Source: Lepidodermella squamata
Taxonomy: Eukaryota; Animalia; Gastrotricha
Direction of reading: 5' to 3'
Length of the DNA: 64,000 nucleotides
NCBI GenBank assembly: GCA_047495785.1
Contig: JBLDXI010000002.1
Coordinates: 1,798,001-1,862,000 of the forward strand
Below are positions 38,797 to 46,051 of the stretch, one piece after another (position 1 is the stretch's first letter; each line of letters opens with the position of its first letter). The notes beneath the pieces were generated by a model. The model was not told the origin of the DNA, did no database searches, and saw only the letters and a list, made by a program, of their open reading frames with translations. Both the position numbers and the translations under genes were made by a program.

Positions 38797-41048
38797 CTAT
38801 TTGTCGAGACCTGTTAATGCGTCCAGAGAGCCATCGAGTAGCAAACGTGAAAAGTAGCTAACATCGCATGACTCAGCCATTCTGCCATTCACAGCGAGCG
38901 GTTGTAGCACCTTGGCGATATTCAAAGAGTTCTCAGTTGGCTGTTTGCGCAGCATTGCGTTGACAATGTCTTCCACATTTTCAAGGGCTGAATCTTCGTT
39001 AGGATCTGCCAGTGATGCGATAGTTTCTAGATCTAGGGATTGCGACTTGCTGCGCCCACTACAGTCGAGTGCTGATAACGAACTGGCGCCCCTTTCATAG
39101 CCGTAATGCATTGTTGGAGACATCCATAACACGCTTCGGAGCATGAGAAACCTTTTGAGAGAAAAAGAGCAAATATTTTAAGGAGGACTCTACAAATGCG
39201 TTTCATCAAGCAAATTTCTCACGCAGTTTTAGCAGCTGGAACTCCACAACGGGCACCAATCCAAAATGTCACAGCTCCCTTCAAAAATTGAACAAGCTTA
39301 TGAATTCATAAATTGTAATCCAGTGTTACCAAGTAAGATTGAAGGCCTTGACACGTGAAGTTGTAACAACCAGTTTGCAGGGCCGAATCTATGGCCTTGA
39401 GTTGCTGCCTCAGTTTTATCGCAACTAAATCCCCAGCTTTCTCCATAACCGGAGCGAAACAGGTGTGATGCCTGTTGAAGGCGGCATCGAGGCCGGTCGT
39501 GCACAAATCAGCCAGGGCGTCCATGCGATAGCGAAACATGACCGGGTCATCCCACGCCGAGTCGAAAAACTTCTTCCCAGCCAGCAGGAAATACTGCCGT
39601 TTCACCAACTCGTCATCGTCAACTAGATGCCACCAACGGCGATTCGCTTCAGTTTTAACCGTGCATTCTTGGACCTGGCGGAAGTTGGCACAGTTCTCCG
39701 ATACTTCCTCCAACCATTCGTTAAGCTTCAACTTTGACCAGGTCAGTAGCAGAAACGCAGGTTTCGCCGTGTTTTGGAGCCATAAGAAACGAGCCCAGTC
39801 AACTTGTTGGTACAAATGCATGCATTGGTAATTCCGAACTACGCAGGAATCTTTGTTTGGGGTGACTAACAGAGCGGCTACCGGTGGGTATTTCGACGGC
39901 TCACGAAGGAAGGGAGTGTTGTCCTCTAATGTTAAGACTTGGTAACCAGGTGGTCCCAATGGCACAGCCGTGGGATTCAGGTCTCTTATCCGATTTATCA
40001 GGCTATCGAGGTAATAAGCTTGCGAAGACCGGTTCGAGGTGCAAAACAGGTCTGACTCGCCAAGCTCAGATAAAAGTTGCATTCGGGCAATGTTAGAAAG
40101 AAGTCGAACCCTGAAAGTAAAAATTTAGCCTGCAGAAACTGTTTTTAACTTAGAAACTCACGCTGCTTTTCCAGCTGTAGGTCCACAGGATGTACCCAGC
40201 CAATAGCCAAAAGAATTCTATCAAAAATGATGAAATTTCAATCTGAATTTGAAGGGCTTCAAGTTACCAGGAAGAAAAGATGAGAATAGCAATCAGCCAC
40301 GAAGCACCCAGTCTCAAGAGCCGCATAAAAGTGGTCGATTTTCATGCGATAGTCGACCGAAACAGTGCCTGTATCGTTGACGATTGTCTTCCGCATACAT
40401 TCAGCATTCAGCCGAAATTCTGACATGTTCATCGAGCAAATGTCGGTTAGCAGTTCCAGGTAAAGCCGAGCATCGCCGATAACTGGCACCAGAGGAGCTC
40501 CGATTTGTAACGGGTTCATAACACCAGCTCCGTCGTCAGGCAACGTTTGGCTCATCAATTTATTACGACGAATGTTGGTGAACCATGATTGGTCAATATA
40601 TCTAGATGTAAAGTATAGGATAACATTAAGGCGATTTCGGCGGGTTAATCCAGACCTGAATAAGATGTCGTCATTGTAACAACGCCACCACCTCGCTTGA
40701 CTGCCCGAAGAGATCATGCATTTTGCTACGGCGTTGAAAGGCTGGCAAGTTTTAGTGAGTTGGACCCGCCAGGCTGTTTGAAGGTCCCATCGCCAGGTGA
40801 GCACTGCCGACATCGGCAGCCATGTGTCATCGAAAATTCTAGAAAATTCAAATGAATCCGGTTTATTTCAGCGTTTTTCTCCAATTTTTGACAAACGCGT
40901 ATAGATCTTCCCATGTGACGTTTTTGTAACCTATTAAGCACAGCAGCGATTCGTTCGGCGGTGGGCATTTTGTTGATTGTGCGGTGACTAGCTCAGTTAA
41001 TACTAATATCAGCGACAAAATAGTAGTTGCAATAGCACTGAATTTCAT
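38797..41048 (-). CDS. Secreted protein with two tandem copies of the same Cys-rich module (6 exons)
   Basis: Signal MKFSAIATTILSLILVLTELVTA; module 1 LLCL...VTWEDLY|...TCQPFNAVAKC...WWRCYNDDIL; module 2 YQCM...VDWARFL...NCANFRQVQEC...WWHLVDDDEL; each module is followed by a small phase-0/phase-2 exon (W.G..CG..A.K.A). Confidence 0.7.
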
Positions 41049-42486: not shown

Positions 42487-44155
42487 ATGTCGTCCGAGTT
42501 GGAACAGCAACAACAACCGCCTGCTGTTGAAGCGCCGCAACAGCCGACGAGCGTCATCGTCGACGCGGCTACCATGGTGATGATGTACGAGCACCAGCAG
42601 AATGTCGACGTTGTCGAGTCGCATCAAACGTGGCATGGCCTCACGCCGTTGGACGATGTTGACGCCGCGTCGAAAATGATGGGCGGCAGCGGCTCGGCGT
42701 TTGAACACCTTGGCGCCGACCGTTCGTCAACAGCTATTGACAGCGCGTCCTTACCGACTTGCTGCTACTGCGGTAAGGCGATAGCTGATGAGTATATTTT
42801 ACGTGTTTGCGGCCTGCCTTGGCATGCCAACTGTCTGCGATGCGCTGATTGCGGCGAACAACTTCACGAGCGGTGTTTCGTCCTATCACCCGTGCCTGAT
42901 TCGAACGAAATGCCGCCGAATATTTTACCGCCGCTACTCTGCAGGAGAGATTACATGAAGTAAGCTTGTTAATTAAAATCAAAATTTTCTAAAAATTCGA
43001 TTTTTTTCAAGGAGGTCATCTTCATGCTGCCCGAGATGCAATCAAGTATTAGGAGAGGGTGATATGGTTAGGAAAGCGCAAGATTTCACGTTTCATGTAA
43101 TTTGCGAATATTTCTTCGCCAATTTTTGTTAACGATTTCTGGTTTTTCTCAGGCTCATTGCTTCGCTTGTGTCGCCTGTCAAAGAGAACTAATGACAGGT
43201 CAACTGTTCTACGTACTCAATGACTCAACTCTGCTGTGCAAATTTCACTTTGAAACTGCTAAGGAAAGGCGTAAGTTGGAAATTGCAGGCCTTAACTTTA
43301 CGAGAACCGAATTCGGATAAAAATACTTTTTCAAAATTTCTGAGAAATTTTTAAAAAATCCGAAAAAATTACTATAAAATTATGCTCGATTTTCTGTGAA
43401 ATCGTGATTGAAATTATTAAGTTTCGTAATTTTGTACCGCTAAAAAAATCCAGGAAAATTCAGAAAAATATGGACAGTTAATTTTCCACCTTAAATGTCT
43501 TAAAATTTATTAAACAATTATTTATTATTTTATTTTCCAGAAAATCGAATATTAGCTGAAGGAGCTGCGTTAGCGGCGAATTCTCCAAGCGAAGCAGCGG
43601 CATTTTTCAGTCAGTTGAACAGCCAATGTAGCGGCGGAGGTTGGGGCGAGGCCGCTCTGCAACTCCTCCGCGGCCCTATCGGTCTCGGCCTTTGTGGCGG
43701 TGGGTTAGGCGGCAGTGGTTCAGTCAATGGACCTGATGGCCCGAAACGGCCTCGAACCACCATAAATTCGCTACAACTCGAACTGTTACGACGGGCCTAT
43801 GAAACTAGTTCGAAACCGCCGAGACATGTTCGTGAGCAGTTATCACAAGAAACAGGGCTTGACATGCGAGTGGTTCAAGTCTGGTTTCAAAACAAGTAAA
43901 ATTTCAAAGAAATTCTGAATATATTTAAATTAAGGCGGATTATTTTTTAGACGCGCTAAAGAGAAGAGAATGCGAAAAGATCCGTCGTCATCAGCTGGTG
44001 GCCATTCGGCTTCGCTGTTCGGTCACGGCAACGGCGATGGTTCGTCGAATTCGTCGGCGAATTTCGGCCGGCGTCGCCGCGGCCACGACGACTCGGACTC
44101 GGACGACTCGATGACATTTGACGACGACGCGCCTGATGACTACGTTGATGATTGA
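42487..44155 (+). CDS. Lhx3: LIM-homeodomain transcription factor of the Lhx3/4 (Lim3) class, 5 exons
   Basis: Two LIM domains ([22 protein letters not shown]; [22 protein letters not shown]) and homeodomain PKRPRTTI...[40 protein letters not shown]. Confidence 0.93.
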
Positions 44156-44271: not shown

Positions 44272-46051
44272 TCAGCCGAAAAACCATGTTAAATTGAGAA
44301 AAATGTCTTCTCGAGGCCCGGTCGGGAATATAGTAGCATAAGGCGTAGTCGTCTCAGTTGTGGTGGTAGGTGGGGTCGTTGTAGTTGTAGTAGTAGTAGT
44401 AGACGTACTACTAGTCTCTGTTGACTGCGAGGTTTCGGTAATGAAAGCCTGAGTTGTTCGCCGAGTTGGTCGCGTCGTAGTTAGGGTGCGTAATTGCTCA
44501 GGGTACATGCGTCGATTTTCATCGGCGCCGACGCCATATGTCCATTTTTGATCGGTCAACTGAACGTAGCCACGACCATCCAACACAGCCAACATCCAAT
44601 AGTAAATCGTATCGCCGGGCGCAATTGGAATATCACTCGTGAAACGAAATGTTGGCGGGGACATGTACCCATCTGAAACAATTAGTAAAATCGGTAACTA
44701 AGGGTGTTGTCACAAATTTGATACCCAAGGTCCTCGCTTCCAGCATAACATTGAACTCGCCAGCTCGAATACCGTATAATGGCTTGTTTATATTGAAGTG
44801 GAGGGTCAAAATACTGAGGTCAGGGTCATCTGAATTAAAAAAATTAATTATTTTCAAAATTTATAATTTTTTTATTTAATTTAATAAAAATTAATAAAAA
44901 ATAAAAATATTTAAATTAATTAATAATTTATTTTTACCTTTCAAGTATTCGAACCGTAAAATATTTTGCCGAGGTTCGACATGGAAGTCGGGCGTGCTAA
45001 AGACGTAGCGACTCGCGCAGCATCCACATTGCGACGCCATCACATTGAGCGGCGCCATGGTGTACCCGGTAACCGCGTACTGGCCAACAGCAACATCATG
45101 CAGTAATTTCGCAACTTCCGGCTGCAAACTTCTCGTCTCCTGAGCTATTTGCAACGGCGTTCGACCCGTGCAGTCCGTCGCGTAGTAGTGAGCCCCGTAA
45201 TCTATCAACGACTGAACGATATCAACCCCGGAAAATAGGGTGACTGCAACGTAAAGCGGGGCATTACACCCGTTCATGTCTAAATTAGGATTCGCGCCCC
45301 GGTGAAGTAGTAGCCTAACTAAATTCACGTCCTTGTATCTAATCGCGTAATACAGCGGAGTTCGACCGATCTTATCCGCCGCATTTATATCAGCGCCTTT
45401 GTTCATCAAAGCCACGATAATTCGGTGGGAAATATTTGAGATACTAGCCGCGTAGTAGAGATCCCGTTTCGGGTCGACATAGGCCTGTCTGCCGAGTACG
45501 ATTAGGACCATTTCAACATTACCAAGACCTATGGCGTAGTGAAGAGGCGAGTTGCCGTTCGAATCTGTCTTATTGATATCGCCGCCGAAATCCAACAGCA
45601 ATCGAAGCGCGTCGACTGAATTCGACATAACCGCCGAAATTATTGGAGTTAACCCGCTTGTAGTCGAGGCGATATTGACCCCAGCGCCGTATCGAATCAG
45701 CAAATGGATCAAGTCGGCATTGGCGTTTTCAGCCGCGTGGTGTAGCGGTACCTTCCCGCCGTCTCTTGTATCGATCGCGTTCGGGTCAGATCCGTGGTCT
45801 AACATATACTGGACTATGTTAGCCTTTTCGAGCTGAACCGCCAAGTTGATAGCTACATCTTCTAACGTTGAGCCGTTTATCAGGGGCATGAAAGACCGAA
45901 CTACGTCGAGATTGCCGTTTCTTATCGCGTCGAATAGCGAGTTGCCGAATTTTTGCGGCGGATCATCGGCTGATATTAAATTCAACACATCGGATAGAAG
46001 TAGGGCTGAAAAAGCTGCGAAAATGCATGATTCAATCTTGAAAATATTCAT
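44272..46051 (-). CDS. Secreted ankyrin-repeat + CBM39 (beta-1,3-glucan recognition) + Thr-rich stalk protein (exons 46051-44938, 44829-44725, 44672-44272)
   Basis: Signal peptide, about 8-9 ankyrin repeats (G.TPL..A...L...GAD.N); splicing gives YVFSTPDFHV...DDPDLSILTLHFNINKPLYGIRAGEF...IAPGDTIYYWMLAVLDGRGY...DQKWT, matching the GNBP/betaGRP N-terminal pattern; then poly-Thr. Confidence 0.8.

Follow-up and report, generated by a model that had tools for sequence, protein, structure and literature searches.

A gastrotrich gene whose predicted product joins an ankyrin-repeat array to a CBM39-fold domain, with an architecture not found outside its lineage

The minus strand of the window (the whole 64,000-nucleotide stretch of Lepidodermella squamata DNA that was analysed) carries, from position 46051 to position 44272, one three-exon gene of 539 codons, the two split codons being counted. 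Its predicted product combines a signal-like N-terminal segment, an array of ankyrin (ANK) repeats, a short linker with a CGCC motif, a domain with the CBM39 fold and a threonine-rich tail. CBM39 is the glucan-sensing head of the arthropod betaGRP/GNBP receptors. We consider it almost certain that the ANK and CBM39 parts belong to a single real gene, and the reading that we favour, by a modest preference, is that of a modular protein of the secretory pathway with an extracellular bridging (adaptor) role. Neither a description nor a further example of the ANK+CBM39 architecture was found outside this lineage in the databases and the literature that were searched.

The coding region (44272-46051, minus strand) was delimited from the open reading frames and the sequence, from its colinearity with the ORFs of an orthologue and from variants that are mostly synonymous. 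Exon 1 (46051-44938), exon 2 (44829-44725) and exon 3 (44672-44272, which ends with the stop codon at 44272-44274) are separated by two phase-1 introns with GT..AG borders, the first of 108 nt with a GC content of 4% (44937-44830) and the second of 52 nt (44724-44673). An in-frame TAG is found six codons 5' of the ATG. The translations of all three exons are colinear with a single unbroken ORF (L001:6154-6954) of an orthologue from a metagenome. This ORF carries the last ANK repeats, the linker and the CBM39 domain without interruption, which confirms the splice model; intron 1 has no counterpart in the orthologue, whose frame continues across this point ('RFEY..DDPD'). The preliminary description, which had spliced three ORF fragments into one gene through these two introns, is borne out, and all the parts of the architecture that it had proposed, from the signal-like N-terminus to the Thr tail, were located where it had placed them.

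The exonic haplotype variants are synonymous in 18 cases out of 19. Intron 2 differs between haplotypes by 10 SNPs and one indel over 52 nt, compared to 4 SNPs in 100 nt of flanking exon sequence in the same contig pair. Judging from these patterns, the gene is evidently intact and under purifying selection. RNA reads over either splice junction were sought in sequencing run X1 and none was found; this run is thin on exons 1 and 3 and empty from 44656 to 45075. It does behave as RNA, since one of its contigs joins 43895 to 43951, the 55-nt GT..AG intron of the neighbour gene being gone. Run X2, according to the search of sequencing runs, is DNA. The homology searches described below were performed either with the window exons one by one or, by reference, with the unbroken ORF of the orthologue.

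The gene is conserved in a second species. The orthologue is syntenic: it adjoins the equivalent of an Lhx3-type gene, followed by three more colinear genes, as established by tblastn of the genes of the orthologous locus against the window. In the window, this neighbour is a separate, convergent Lhx3/Lim3-type LIM-homeobox gene (42751-44155, plus strand, from tblastn and from Pfam LIM and Homeodomain matches on the genes of the relative), which serves as synteny anchor and whose stop (44155) lies 117 nt from that of the ANK-CBM39 gene (44272). Two divergent ANK-CBM39-like paralogues are present elsewhere in the L. squamata genome (G000:C7:2752320 and 2756303). Like the gene described here, they run from the last two ANK repeats through a linker to a CBM39-like domain (BLASTP E 2e-9, 225 columns), and they share its two hairpin cysteines and the 'LRF.Y..DDP' start of the domain. 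Both exceed it in length, the open frames at the match having 851 and 955 residues, and contain additional ANK repeats and internal Thr-rich tracts; unlike the ANK-CBM39 gene, they are devoid of the CxCC motif, and their CBM39-like part is too divergent to be detected by Pfam. The fact that the paralogues have the ANK-linker-CBM39 order in common implies that the fusion is old.

This observation bears on the origin of the ANK part, for which the absence of introns had been taken as a sign of exon capture or of a foreign or retroposed source. In this scenario, an ANK exon of bacterial, viral or retroposed origin was fused to a resident CBM39 gene. The ANK part does lie within one exon in L. squamata, and many of the matches among the best 120 of 978 are bacterial or metagenomic. 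However, exon 1 extends past the repeats over the linker and covers the 23 initial codons of the CBM39 domain; in the orthologue, a 54-nt intron interrupts the ANK block, and the CBM39 part contains none. The GC content of the exons (46-49%) is in line with that of the region, and the strongest non-orthologous matches among the best 120 of 978 are generic (24-36% identity) and indicate no donor. Since the positions of introns differ between the orthologues and do not mark the borders of domains, we find nothing that points to capture or to a foreign source of the ANK exon, and together with the age of the fusion this makes such an origin extremely improbable.

The CBM39-fold domain (44533-45007, minus strand) begins at residue 349, C-terminal to the ANK array and the linker, and three exons contribute to it: exon 1 with its end, exon 2 in full and exon 3 with its first part. 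It was recognised by Pfam in the orthologue, by a profile made of canonical domains and by a fold model. Pfam CBM39 (PF15886) scores 32.3 bits on the unbroken ORF of the orthologue, against a cut-off of 25; the lower score of window exon 3 alone (18.1 bits, E 0.0023) is explained by the introns, which split the domain. A canonical-only profile, for which eight canonical CBM39 domains were used and which was run on the 1604 open pieces of the window, matches exon 2 with its positions 25-61 (E 7.6e-7) and exon 3 with its positions 70-109 (E 1e-9), the next best piece having an E value of 1.1. A reciprocal search with phmmer, which covered 1.84 billion protein representatives, gave 8 matches, and six of the seven that are not the query itself are canonical CBM39 proteins. 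The match to P0124, a 2637-residue protein with Ig repeats, was rejected as spurious. When the domain alone was compared by sequence to the PDB, four of the five matches at E <=10, including the top three, were CBM39 domains.

The model built for the domain of the orthologue (pLDDT 86.3, pTM 0.78) points in the same direction, although it is important to note that the alignment used for the model contained canonical CBM39 rows, which favours the CBM39 fold. A Foldseek search of the PDB with this model returns N-terminal CBM39 domains of betaGRP/GNBP3 at all of ranks 1-9, with E values from 9e-6 to 3e-4 and TM scores, normalised by target, of 0.69-0.84. The best shape match in the ESM Atlas is an arthropod CBM39+GH16 cluster. 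The assignment to CBM39 made in the preliminary description is thus supported by profile and by fold, and on the grounds of sequence and model the C-terminal domain has a genuine CBM39-family fold, an Ig-like beta-sandwich.

Whether the domain senses glucan is a separate question. Tyr78, Gly83, Gly85 and Arg87 are described as residues in contact with beta-1,3-glucan (PMC6678557), and a review singles out Asp49 as contacting two glucan chains (PMC7915573). With the 3AQX alignment used to set the numbering offset from Gly83, Gly85 and Arg87, positions 49/78/83/85/87 are occupied by Met, Leu, Gly, Gly and Val in the window and by Leu, Leu, Lys, Gly and Thr in the orthologue. The equivalents of Asp49, Tyr78 and Arg87 are replaced in both, which leaves beta-1,3-glucan sensing unproven. 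As for the retained family residues on which a role of glucan sensor or opsonin had been based, the 'GDT.YYW' core is kept, and the His of 'LHFNIN' and G.GY stand in the window; the orthologue has Asn and KRGF instead, so that this claim holds in part, and the function drawn from it is weakened by the loss of the three contact side chains. A further motif, 'TDQ.WT', is also kept.

A genuine beta-1,3-glucan receptor or opsonin, in which CBM39 would sense fungal or oomycete glucan and the ANK repeats would recruit an immune effector or a protease cascade, has in its favour the membership of the family by profile and fold, the motifs just mentioned and the presence of Gly83 and Gly85 in the window. 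Other animal CBM39 domains, such as that of the Dreissena CBM39+GH16 protein P0127, are likewise devoid of Tyr78 and Arg87. Against it, the position of Asp49 is Asp in all eight aligned canonical CBM39 domains, and the genome already contains, elsewhere, a canonical CBM39+GH16 gene (C28). We regard such a receptor as quite unlikely. Taken separately, the chance that the protein binds some glycan is only a little short of even, specific binding of beta-1,3-glucan would be a good deal less likely, and the domain could also be a non-lectin beta-sandwich.

The ANK array (45092-45946, minus strand) consists of an N-cap and eight repeats, defined by Pfam (Ank_2, E 1e-44; Ank, E 1.6e-37) and by repeat anchors; the eight anchors, placed at a spacing of 28-35 residues, agree with tandem ANK repeats of 33 residues. 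When the second ORF of the orthologue was compared in full to PDB sequences, designed ankyrin proteins dominated the matches. The array has N-glycosylation sequons at residues 59, 160 and 206, with equivalents at 53, 155 and 201 in the orthologue, and its two hairpin cysteines are kept in the orthologue; the pair is also present in a paralogue. The inter-domain linker (45008-45091, minus strand), defined from the sequence and the alignment with the orthologue, includes the CGCC motif at 45028-45017, which is CSCC at the same place in the orthologue. The model of the orthologue's linker is disordered (pLDDT 30-35), and in a two-module model of ANK and CBM39 (pTM 0.60) no confident packing was seen between the two domains. 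Downstream of the CBM39 domain, a mucin-like tract of 48 residues was identified by composition (44344-44487, minus strand; 58% Thr, 10% Ser, 6% Pro). It is rich in Ser, Thr and Pro in the manner of mucin-like proteins, and nine of its 10 variants are synonymous. The orthologue has a tail with a Thr content of just 20%, which does not align with that of the window.

The N-terminal signal-like segment (45968-46051, minus strand) is some 20-28 residues long, its hydrophobic core occupying residues 9-19, and an equivalent segment exists in the orthologue. The Kyte-Doolittle value of the core is 2.60 over 11 residues in the window and 2.19 in the orthologue, and in both a short basic stretch precedes the hydrophobic core, which is followed by small residues. 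No later segment resembles a membrane span (the maximum is 1.54 over 19 residues on the same scale). A GPI anchor or a membrane tail was considered and rejected: the final ten residues or so are just moderately hydrophobic, and the tail of the orthologue is polar.

Ankyrin repeats are textbook intracellular scaffolds and are overwhelmingly found inside the cell, and CxCC clusters are typical of cytosolic palmitoylation or acylation sites. It may be that the protein is not secreted, that its hydrophobic N-terminus is not cleaved and that it is cytosolic or tethered to a membrane with a palmitoylated CxCC motif. We consider this very improbable, given that both orthologues have N-termini with the same basic, hydrophobic and small-residue layout, that three sequons are conserved within the ANK array and that the tail is rich in Thr. 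Canonical CBM39 proteins, moreover, are extracellular, betaGRP/GNBP3 being a soluble haemolymph receptor (PMC7915573). Based on the signal-like N-terminus, the three conserved sequons, the conserved pair of cysteines, the mucin-like tail and the location of canonical CBM39 proteins, the ANK-CBM39 protein is probably secreted.

In the bridging mechanism that we propose, the signal peptide would lead into eight ANK repeats that form a rigid array, then a flexible CxCC linker of about 25 residues, the CBM39 beta-sandwich and a Ser/Thr-rich tail, the latter being probably O-glycosylated. The CBM39-like module would dock on a polymeric surface, most likely a carbohydrate, and the groove of the ANK array would hold a conserved protein partner. 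The flexibility of the linkage is suggested by the pLDDT of the linker and the pTM of the two-module model. The conserved partner is proposed because the two orthologues agree at 66% of the positions of the ANK binding face and at 60% of the remaining positions, in a comparison of two sequences (Fisher p 0.51).

The protein may otherwise have nothing to do with immunity and belong to mucus, adhesive, cuticle or the gut lumen, where it would be held in a glycan matrix or on food particles by its mucin tail and its CBM39-like fold. The Thr content of the tail and an ANK face that is conserved, not diversifying, are consistent with this idea. The GH16 ORF of C28 retains an E-x-D-x-x-E motif, which we take to be the catalytic motif and which hints at glucan digestion. 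However, the orthologue does not share the mucin tail, and nothing ties the protein specifically to the cuticle or to adhesive glands, and we give this explanation a low probability. To return to the adaptor that we favour, a role of it in immunity is doubtful. It is improbable, but conceivable, that secreted ANK arrays are used as extracellular binding modules in gastrotrichs, the gene and its paralogues being part of an undescribed humoral recognition and protease system in which ANK repeats would fill the role that leucine-rich repeats or lectins have in other animals.

The gene is one of few molecular leads into the extracellular and defence biology of Gastrotricha. Outside arthropods, the CBM39 lectin fold has been adopted in a new setting, and in at least one animal lineage ankyrin repeats appear to be employed extracellularly. 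An expressible protein of about 540 residues offers a test of natural ANK arrays in an oxidising and glycosylating environment, and also of what a CBM39 fold binds once the side chains that contact glucan are gone.

The novelty of the architecture, which the preliminary description had put forward, holds in all the resources that we searched, the orthologue and the two paralogues being the other proteins in which it is present. A word-indexed search with exon 1 gave one close relative among the best 120 of 978 ANK matches, and PF15886 was found in none of these 120. The region of the orthologue comprising the linker and CBM39 matched nothing besides itself, and no ankyrin fusion was among the 8 matches of the exhaustive phmmer search of 1.84 billion representatives. 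A scan of JGI metagenomes for ANK+CBM39 gave nothing, and searches of the ESM Atlas by features and by shape gave no ANK+CBM39 cluster. A literature search on CBM39 together with ankyrin returned no relevant paper, and the results of that on secreted or extracellular ankyrin were limited to effectors of bacteria and oomycetes and to latrotoxin.

Among known proteins, the nearest clusters by language-model features are of the FANK1 type (fibronectin type III and ANK), at 0.84, below the 0.9 threshold for a lead; they likewise combine a beta-sandwich with ANK repeats, in the reverse order, and the likeness is one of features only. Outside the lineage, the most similar CBM39 sequence is that of the Branchiostoma protein P0122 (36% identity, E 2.4e-6), a stand-alone domain of 116 residues without ankyrin repeats, in which the Asp49 position is kept. 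In betaGRP/GNBP3 (Bombyx and Plodia betaGRP, Drosophila GNBP3; PDB 3AQX, 3AQY/3AQZ, 3IE4), CBM39 directly follows the signal peptide and a GH16 or GH16-like domain is C-terminal to it, whereas here CBM39 is C-terminal to the ANK array and there is no GH16 domain (Pfam detects Ank families and CBM39 only, and the ORF ends at 44272). The contact residues Asp49, Tyr78 and Arg87 of these receptors are those that are replaced in the ANK-CBM39 protein. The two have in common the CBM39 beta-sandwich and the motifs of the family, and betaGRP/GNBP3 are secreted, as the ANK-CBM39 protein probably is.

The window is eukaryotic, its GC content is about 39-48%, and its introns are short and AT-rich. On its minus strand, an open reading frame starts with an ATG at 46051, six codons downstream of an in-frame TAG, and continues for 371 codons (exon 1) up to a GT at 44937. 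It is followed by a first intron of 108 nt (44937-44830, GT..AG, phase 1, 4% GC), by an exon 2 of 105 nt in which the frame stays open, by a second intron of 52 nt (44724-44673, GT..AG, phase 1) and by an exon 3 of 401 nt, which ends at the stop codon 44272-44274. The product of this ANK-CBM39 gene is 539 codons long.

One close relative of exon 1 stands among the best 120 of 978 matches in a word-indexed protein search: P0001 (59% identity), encoded on an ENA metagenome scaffold (L001). Its ankyrin ORF (L001:5371-6096) is followed by a 54-nt intron (L001:6093-6146, GT..AG, phase 2) and by a second, continuous ORF (L001:6154-6954), in which the final pair of ankyrin repeats is joined through a CSCC linker to a CBM39 domain and a Ser/Thr-containing tail. 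The products of the three window exons are colinear with this second ORF: residues 249-369 of exon 1 align with its residues 1-121, exon 2 with residues 125-154 and exon 3 from residue 168 onward, and the two split codons of the window coincide with the read-through 'RFEY..DDPD' of the orthologue. The splicing proposed in the preliminary description is thus confirmed by alignment to a single uninterrupted ORF.

The synteny with L001 includes a convergent Lhx3-type LIM-homeobox gene, and then three further colinear genes. In the window this Lhx3/Lim3-type gene occupies 42751-44155 on the plus strand; only 117 nt separate the stop codons of the two genes, so that their 3' UTRs probably overlap. 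CUB-domain and tyrosine-kinase ORFs lie upstream of the orthologue (L001:1752-4290, minus strand) and have no counterpart anywhere in the 64-kb window, which makes the synteny one-sided. Another window gene (39222-40717, minus strand) is 41-51% identical to a 430-residue product of the L001 locus; this product has no Pfam match on record.

A second haplotype is present in the contigs of the DNA run X2. Its exonic differences from the window gene are synonymous third-position changes in 18 cases out of 19, the last one being a Thr to Pro substitution in the tail, while the 52 nt of intron 2 carry 10 SNPs and one indel. Together with the colinearity and the synteny, these synonymous variants show that the three exons form one gene, which is under purifying selection in this frame, including the Thr-rich tail. 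The X2 haplotype or strain is 7-9% divergent over short contigs matching 44344-44765 and 45464-45533 (13 of 187 nt and 14 of 152 nt differ), which reflects an unusually high heterozygosity, or possibly a mixed culture. A contig of another run, X1, joins 43895 to 43951, from which the 55-nt intron of the neighbour gene (43896-43950, GT..AG) is spliced out; X1 therefore behaves as RNA. Cover of the ANK-CBM39 gene by X1 is thin, limited to short fragments of exon 1 and of exon 3, with nothing between 44656 and 45075.

The two introns of the window gene are both phase 1 and both in the CBM39 part, and its ankyrin part has none; the single intron of the orthologue is phase 2 and in the ankyrin part, and its CBM39 part has none. 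At about 59% protein identity the two genes share no intron position, so intron turnover (window 44673-44937 versus L001:6093-6146) is complete, and an exon border between the ankyrin and CBM39 modules exists in neither species. In the genome from which the window comes, a profile search detected two further loci on contig C7 (L006 and L007, G000:C7:2750820-2758102), neighbouring long ORFs whose ankyrin repeats are interrupted by internal Thr-rich tracts and followed by a CBM39-like stretch unrecognised by Pfam. One of them aligns colinearly to the orthologue from the last two repeats through the linker to the domain (E 2e-9). Since these paralogues have the same fusion, the latter is old and has been duplicated. 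Downstream of these long ORFs, ORF fragments with an 'ICLPN'-type motif hint at a protease-like domain. The idea that the ankyrin exon, intronless in the window, is foreign or retroposed is very improbable, because no exon border marks the module junction, the ankyrin part of the orthologue has an intron, the C7 paralogues share the fusion, and the other ankyrin matches of exon 1 (among the best 120 of 978) are generic, with 24-36% identity.

The exons of the window were searched singly, and the whole-domain work was done with the uninterrupted ORF of the orthologue, which scores 32.3 bits against Pfam CBM39 (cut-off 25). A profile made from eight canonical CBM39 domains only, run on the 1604 open pieces of the window, matches exon 2 (E 7.6e-7, profile positions 25-61) and exon 3 (E 1e-9, positions 70-109), in the correct order; the best other piece is no better than E 1.1. 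Exhaustive phmmer with the orthologue's domain against 1.84 billion representatives returned the domain itself and seven proteins, six of which are canonical CBM39 (amphioxus, cockroach, beetle, zebra mussel, marine transcriptomes). Sequence comparison with the PDB gave five matches at E up to 10; four of them, among which the top three, are CBM39 domains, although with weak E-values (0.16-1.3). The domain was modelled (pLDDT 86, pTM 0.78) from an alignment that included canonical CBM39 rows, and the nine best Foldseek matches of this model in the PDB are all the solved betaGRP/GNBP3 N-terminal domains, CBM56 coming next; the best match by shape in the ESM Atlas is an arthropod CBM39+GH16 cluster. 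The Pfam score, the canonical-only profile and the Foldseek ranking all support the initial assignment to CBM39.

The ankyrin array (Pfam Ank_2 1e-44, Ank 1.6e-37) consists of an N-terminal cap and eight repeats, placed by anchors, at 28-35-residue spacing. In a comparison limited to the two orthologues, its binding-face positions are as conserved as the remaining ones (66% versus 60% identity), which speaks more for a constant partner than for a recognition surface that diversifies. The linker is predicted to be disordered, and the two-module model has no confident ankyrin-CBM39 packing. In the tail, Thr makes up 58% of a 48-residue stretch in the window, but only 20% in the orthologue.

Both orthologues begin with one or two basic residues, a hydrophobic core (Kyte-Doolittle 2.6 in the window, 2.2 in the orthologue) and small residues. 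Hydropathy detects no membrane-like stretch after the N-terminus in either, and the protein has no GPI-like or membrane tail. Three N-glycosylation sequons occupy homologous positions inside both arrays, and a cysteine pair at adjacent hairpin tips (repeats 7 and 8), also found in the orthologue and one paralogue, may form a disulfide. On this indirect evidence the protein is probably secreted; that it is not is quite improbable.

No other ANK+CBM39 protein was found in two protein collections (in the word-indexed one, among the best 120 of 978 matches), a metagenome scan, the ESM Atlas or the literature, the divergent domain reaching as a query only its closest CBM39 relatives. The architecture, an unusual one, is well supported; its function is putative. 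We propose a secreted bridging protein, whose CBM39-fold module would dock onto a polymeric, probably glycan, surface, and would be joined by a flexible tether to an ankyrin array holding a conserved protein partner. A less likely alternative, a little behind the glucan receptor discussed below, would be a component of matrix, mucus or gut with no immune role.

In Bombyx betaGRP-N, Asp49 touches two of the three glucan chains (PMC7915573), and Tyr78, Gly83, Gly85 and Arg87 are listed as glucan contacts in the Plodia protein (PMC6678557). We mapped these residues using the 3AQX alignment and A1, an alignment that includes the eight canonical domains, with the numbering offset set by Gly83, Gly85 and Arg87. 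Asp49 is Met in the window and Leu in the orthologue, Tyr78 is Leu in both, and Arg87 is Val and Thr, respectively; only glycines survive, Gly85 in both proteins and Gly83 in the window (Lys in the orthologue). The His first described as retained is Asn in the orthologue. The replacements in both orthologues weaken the initial reading as a glucan sensor. Elsewhere in the window's genome, a different contig carries a canonical CBM39+GH16 gene (L002, G000:C28:1195210-1198431). In L002, the canonical CBM39 exon precedes GH16 exons whose E-I-D-L-M-E resembles the catalytic motif of a glucanase and seems intact, and a second GH16-like copy adjoins it, which suggests tandem active beta-1,3-glucanase or GNBP genes. 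A true glucan receptor or opsonin is unlikely, considering this separate gene and the loss of Asp49, the one contact position that is invariant (8/8) in the aligned canonical domains; yet glucan binding may still be possible, since Tyr78 and Arg87 are missing from some of the canonical CBM39 domains of animals as well.
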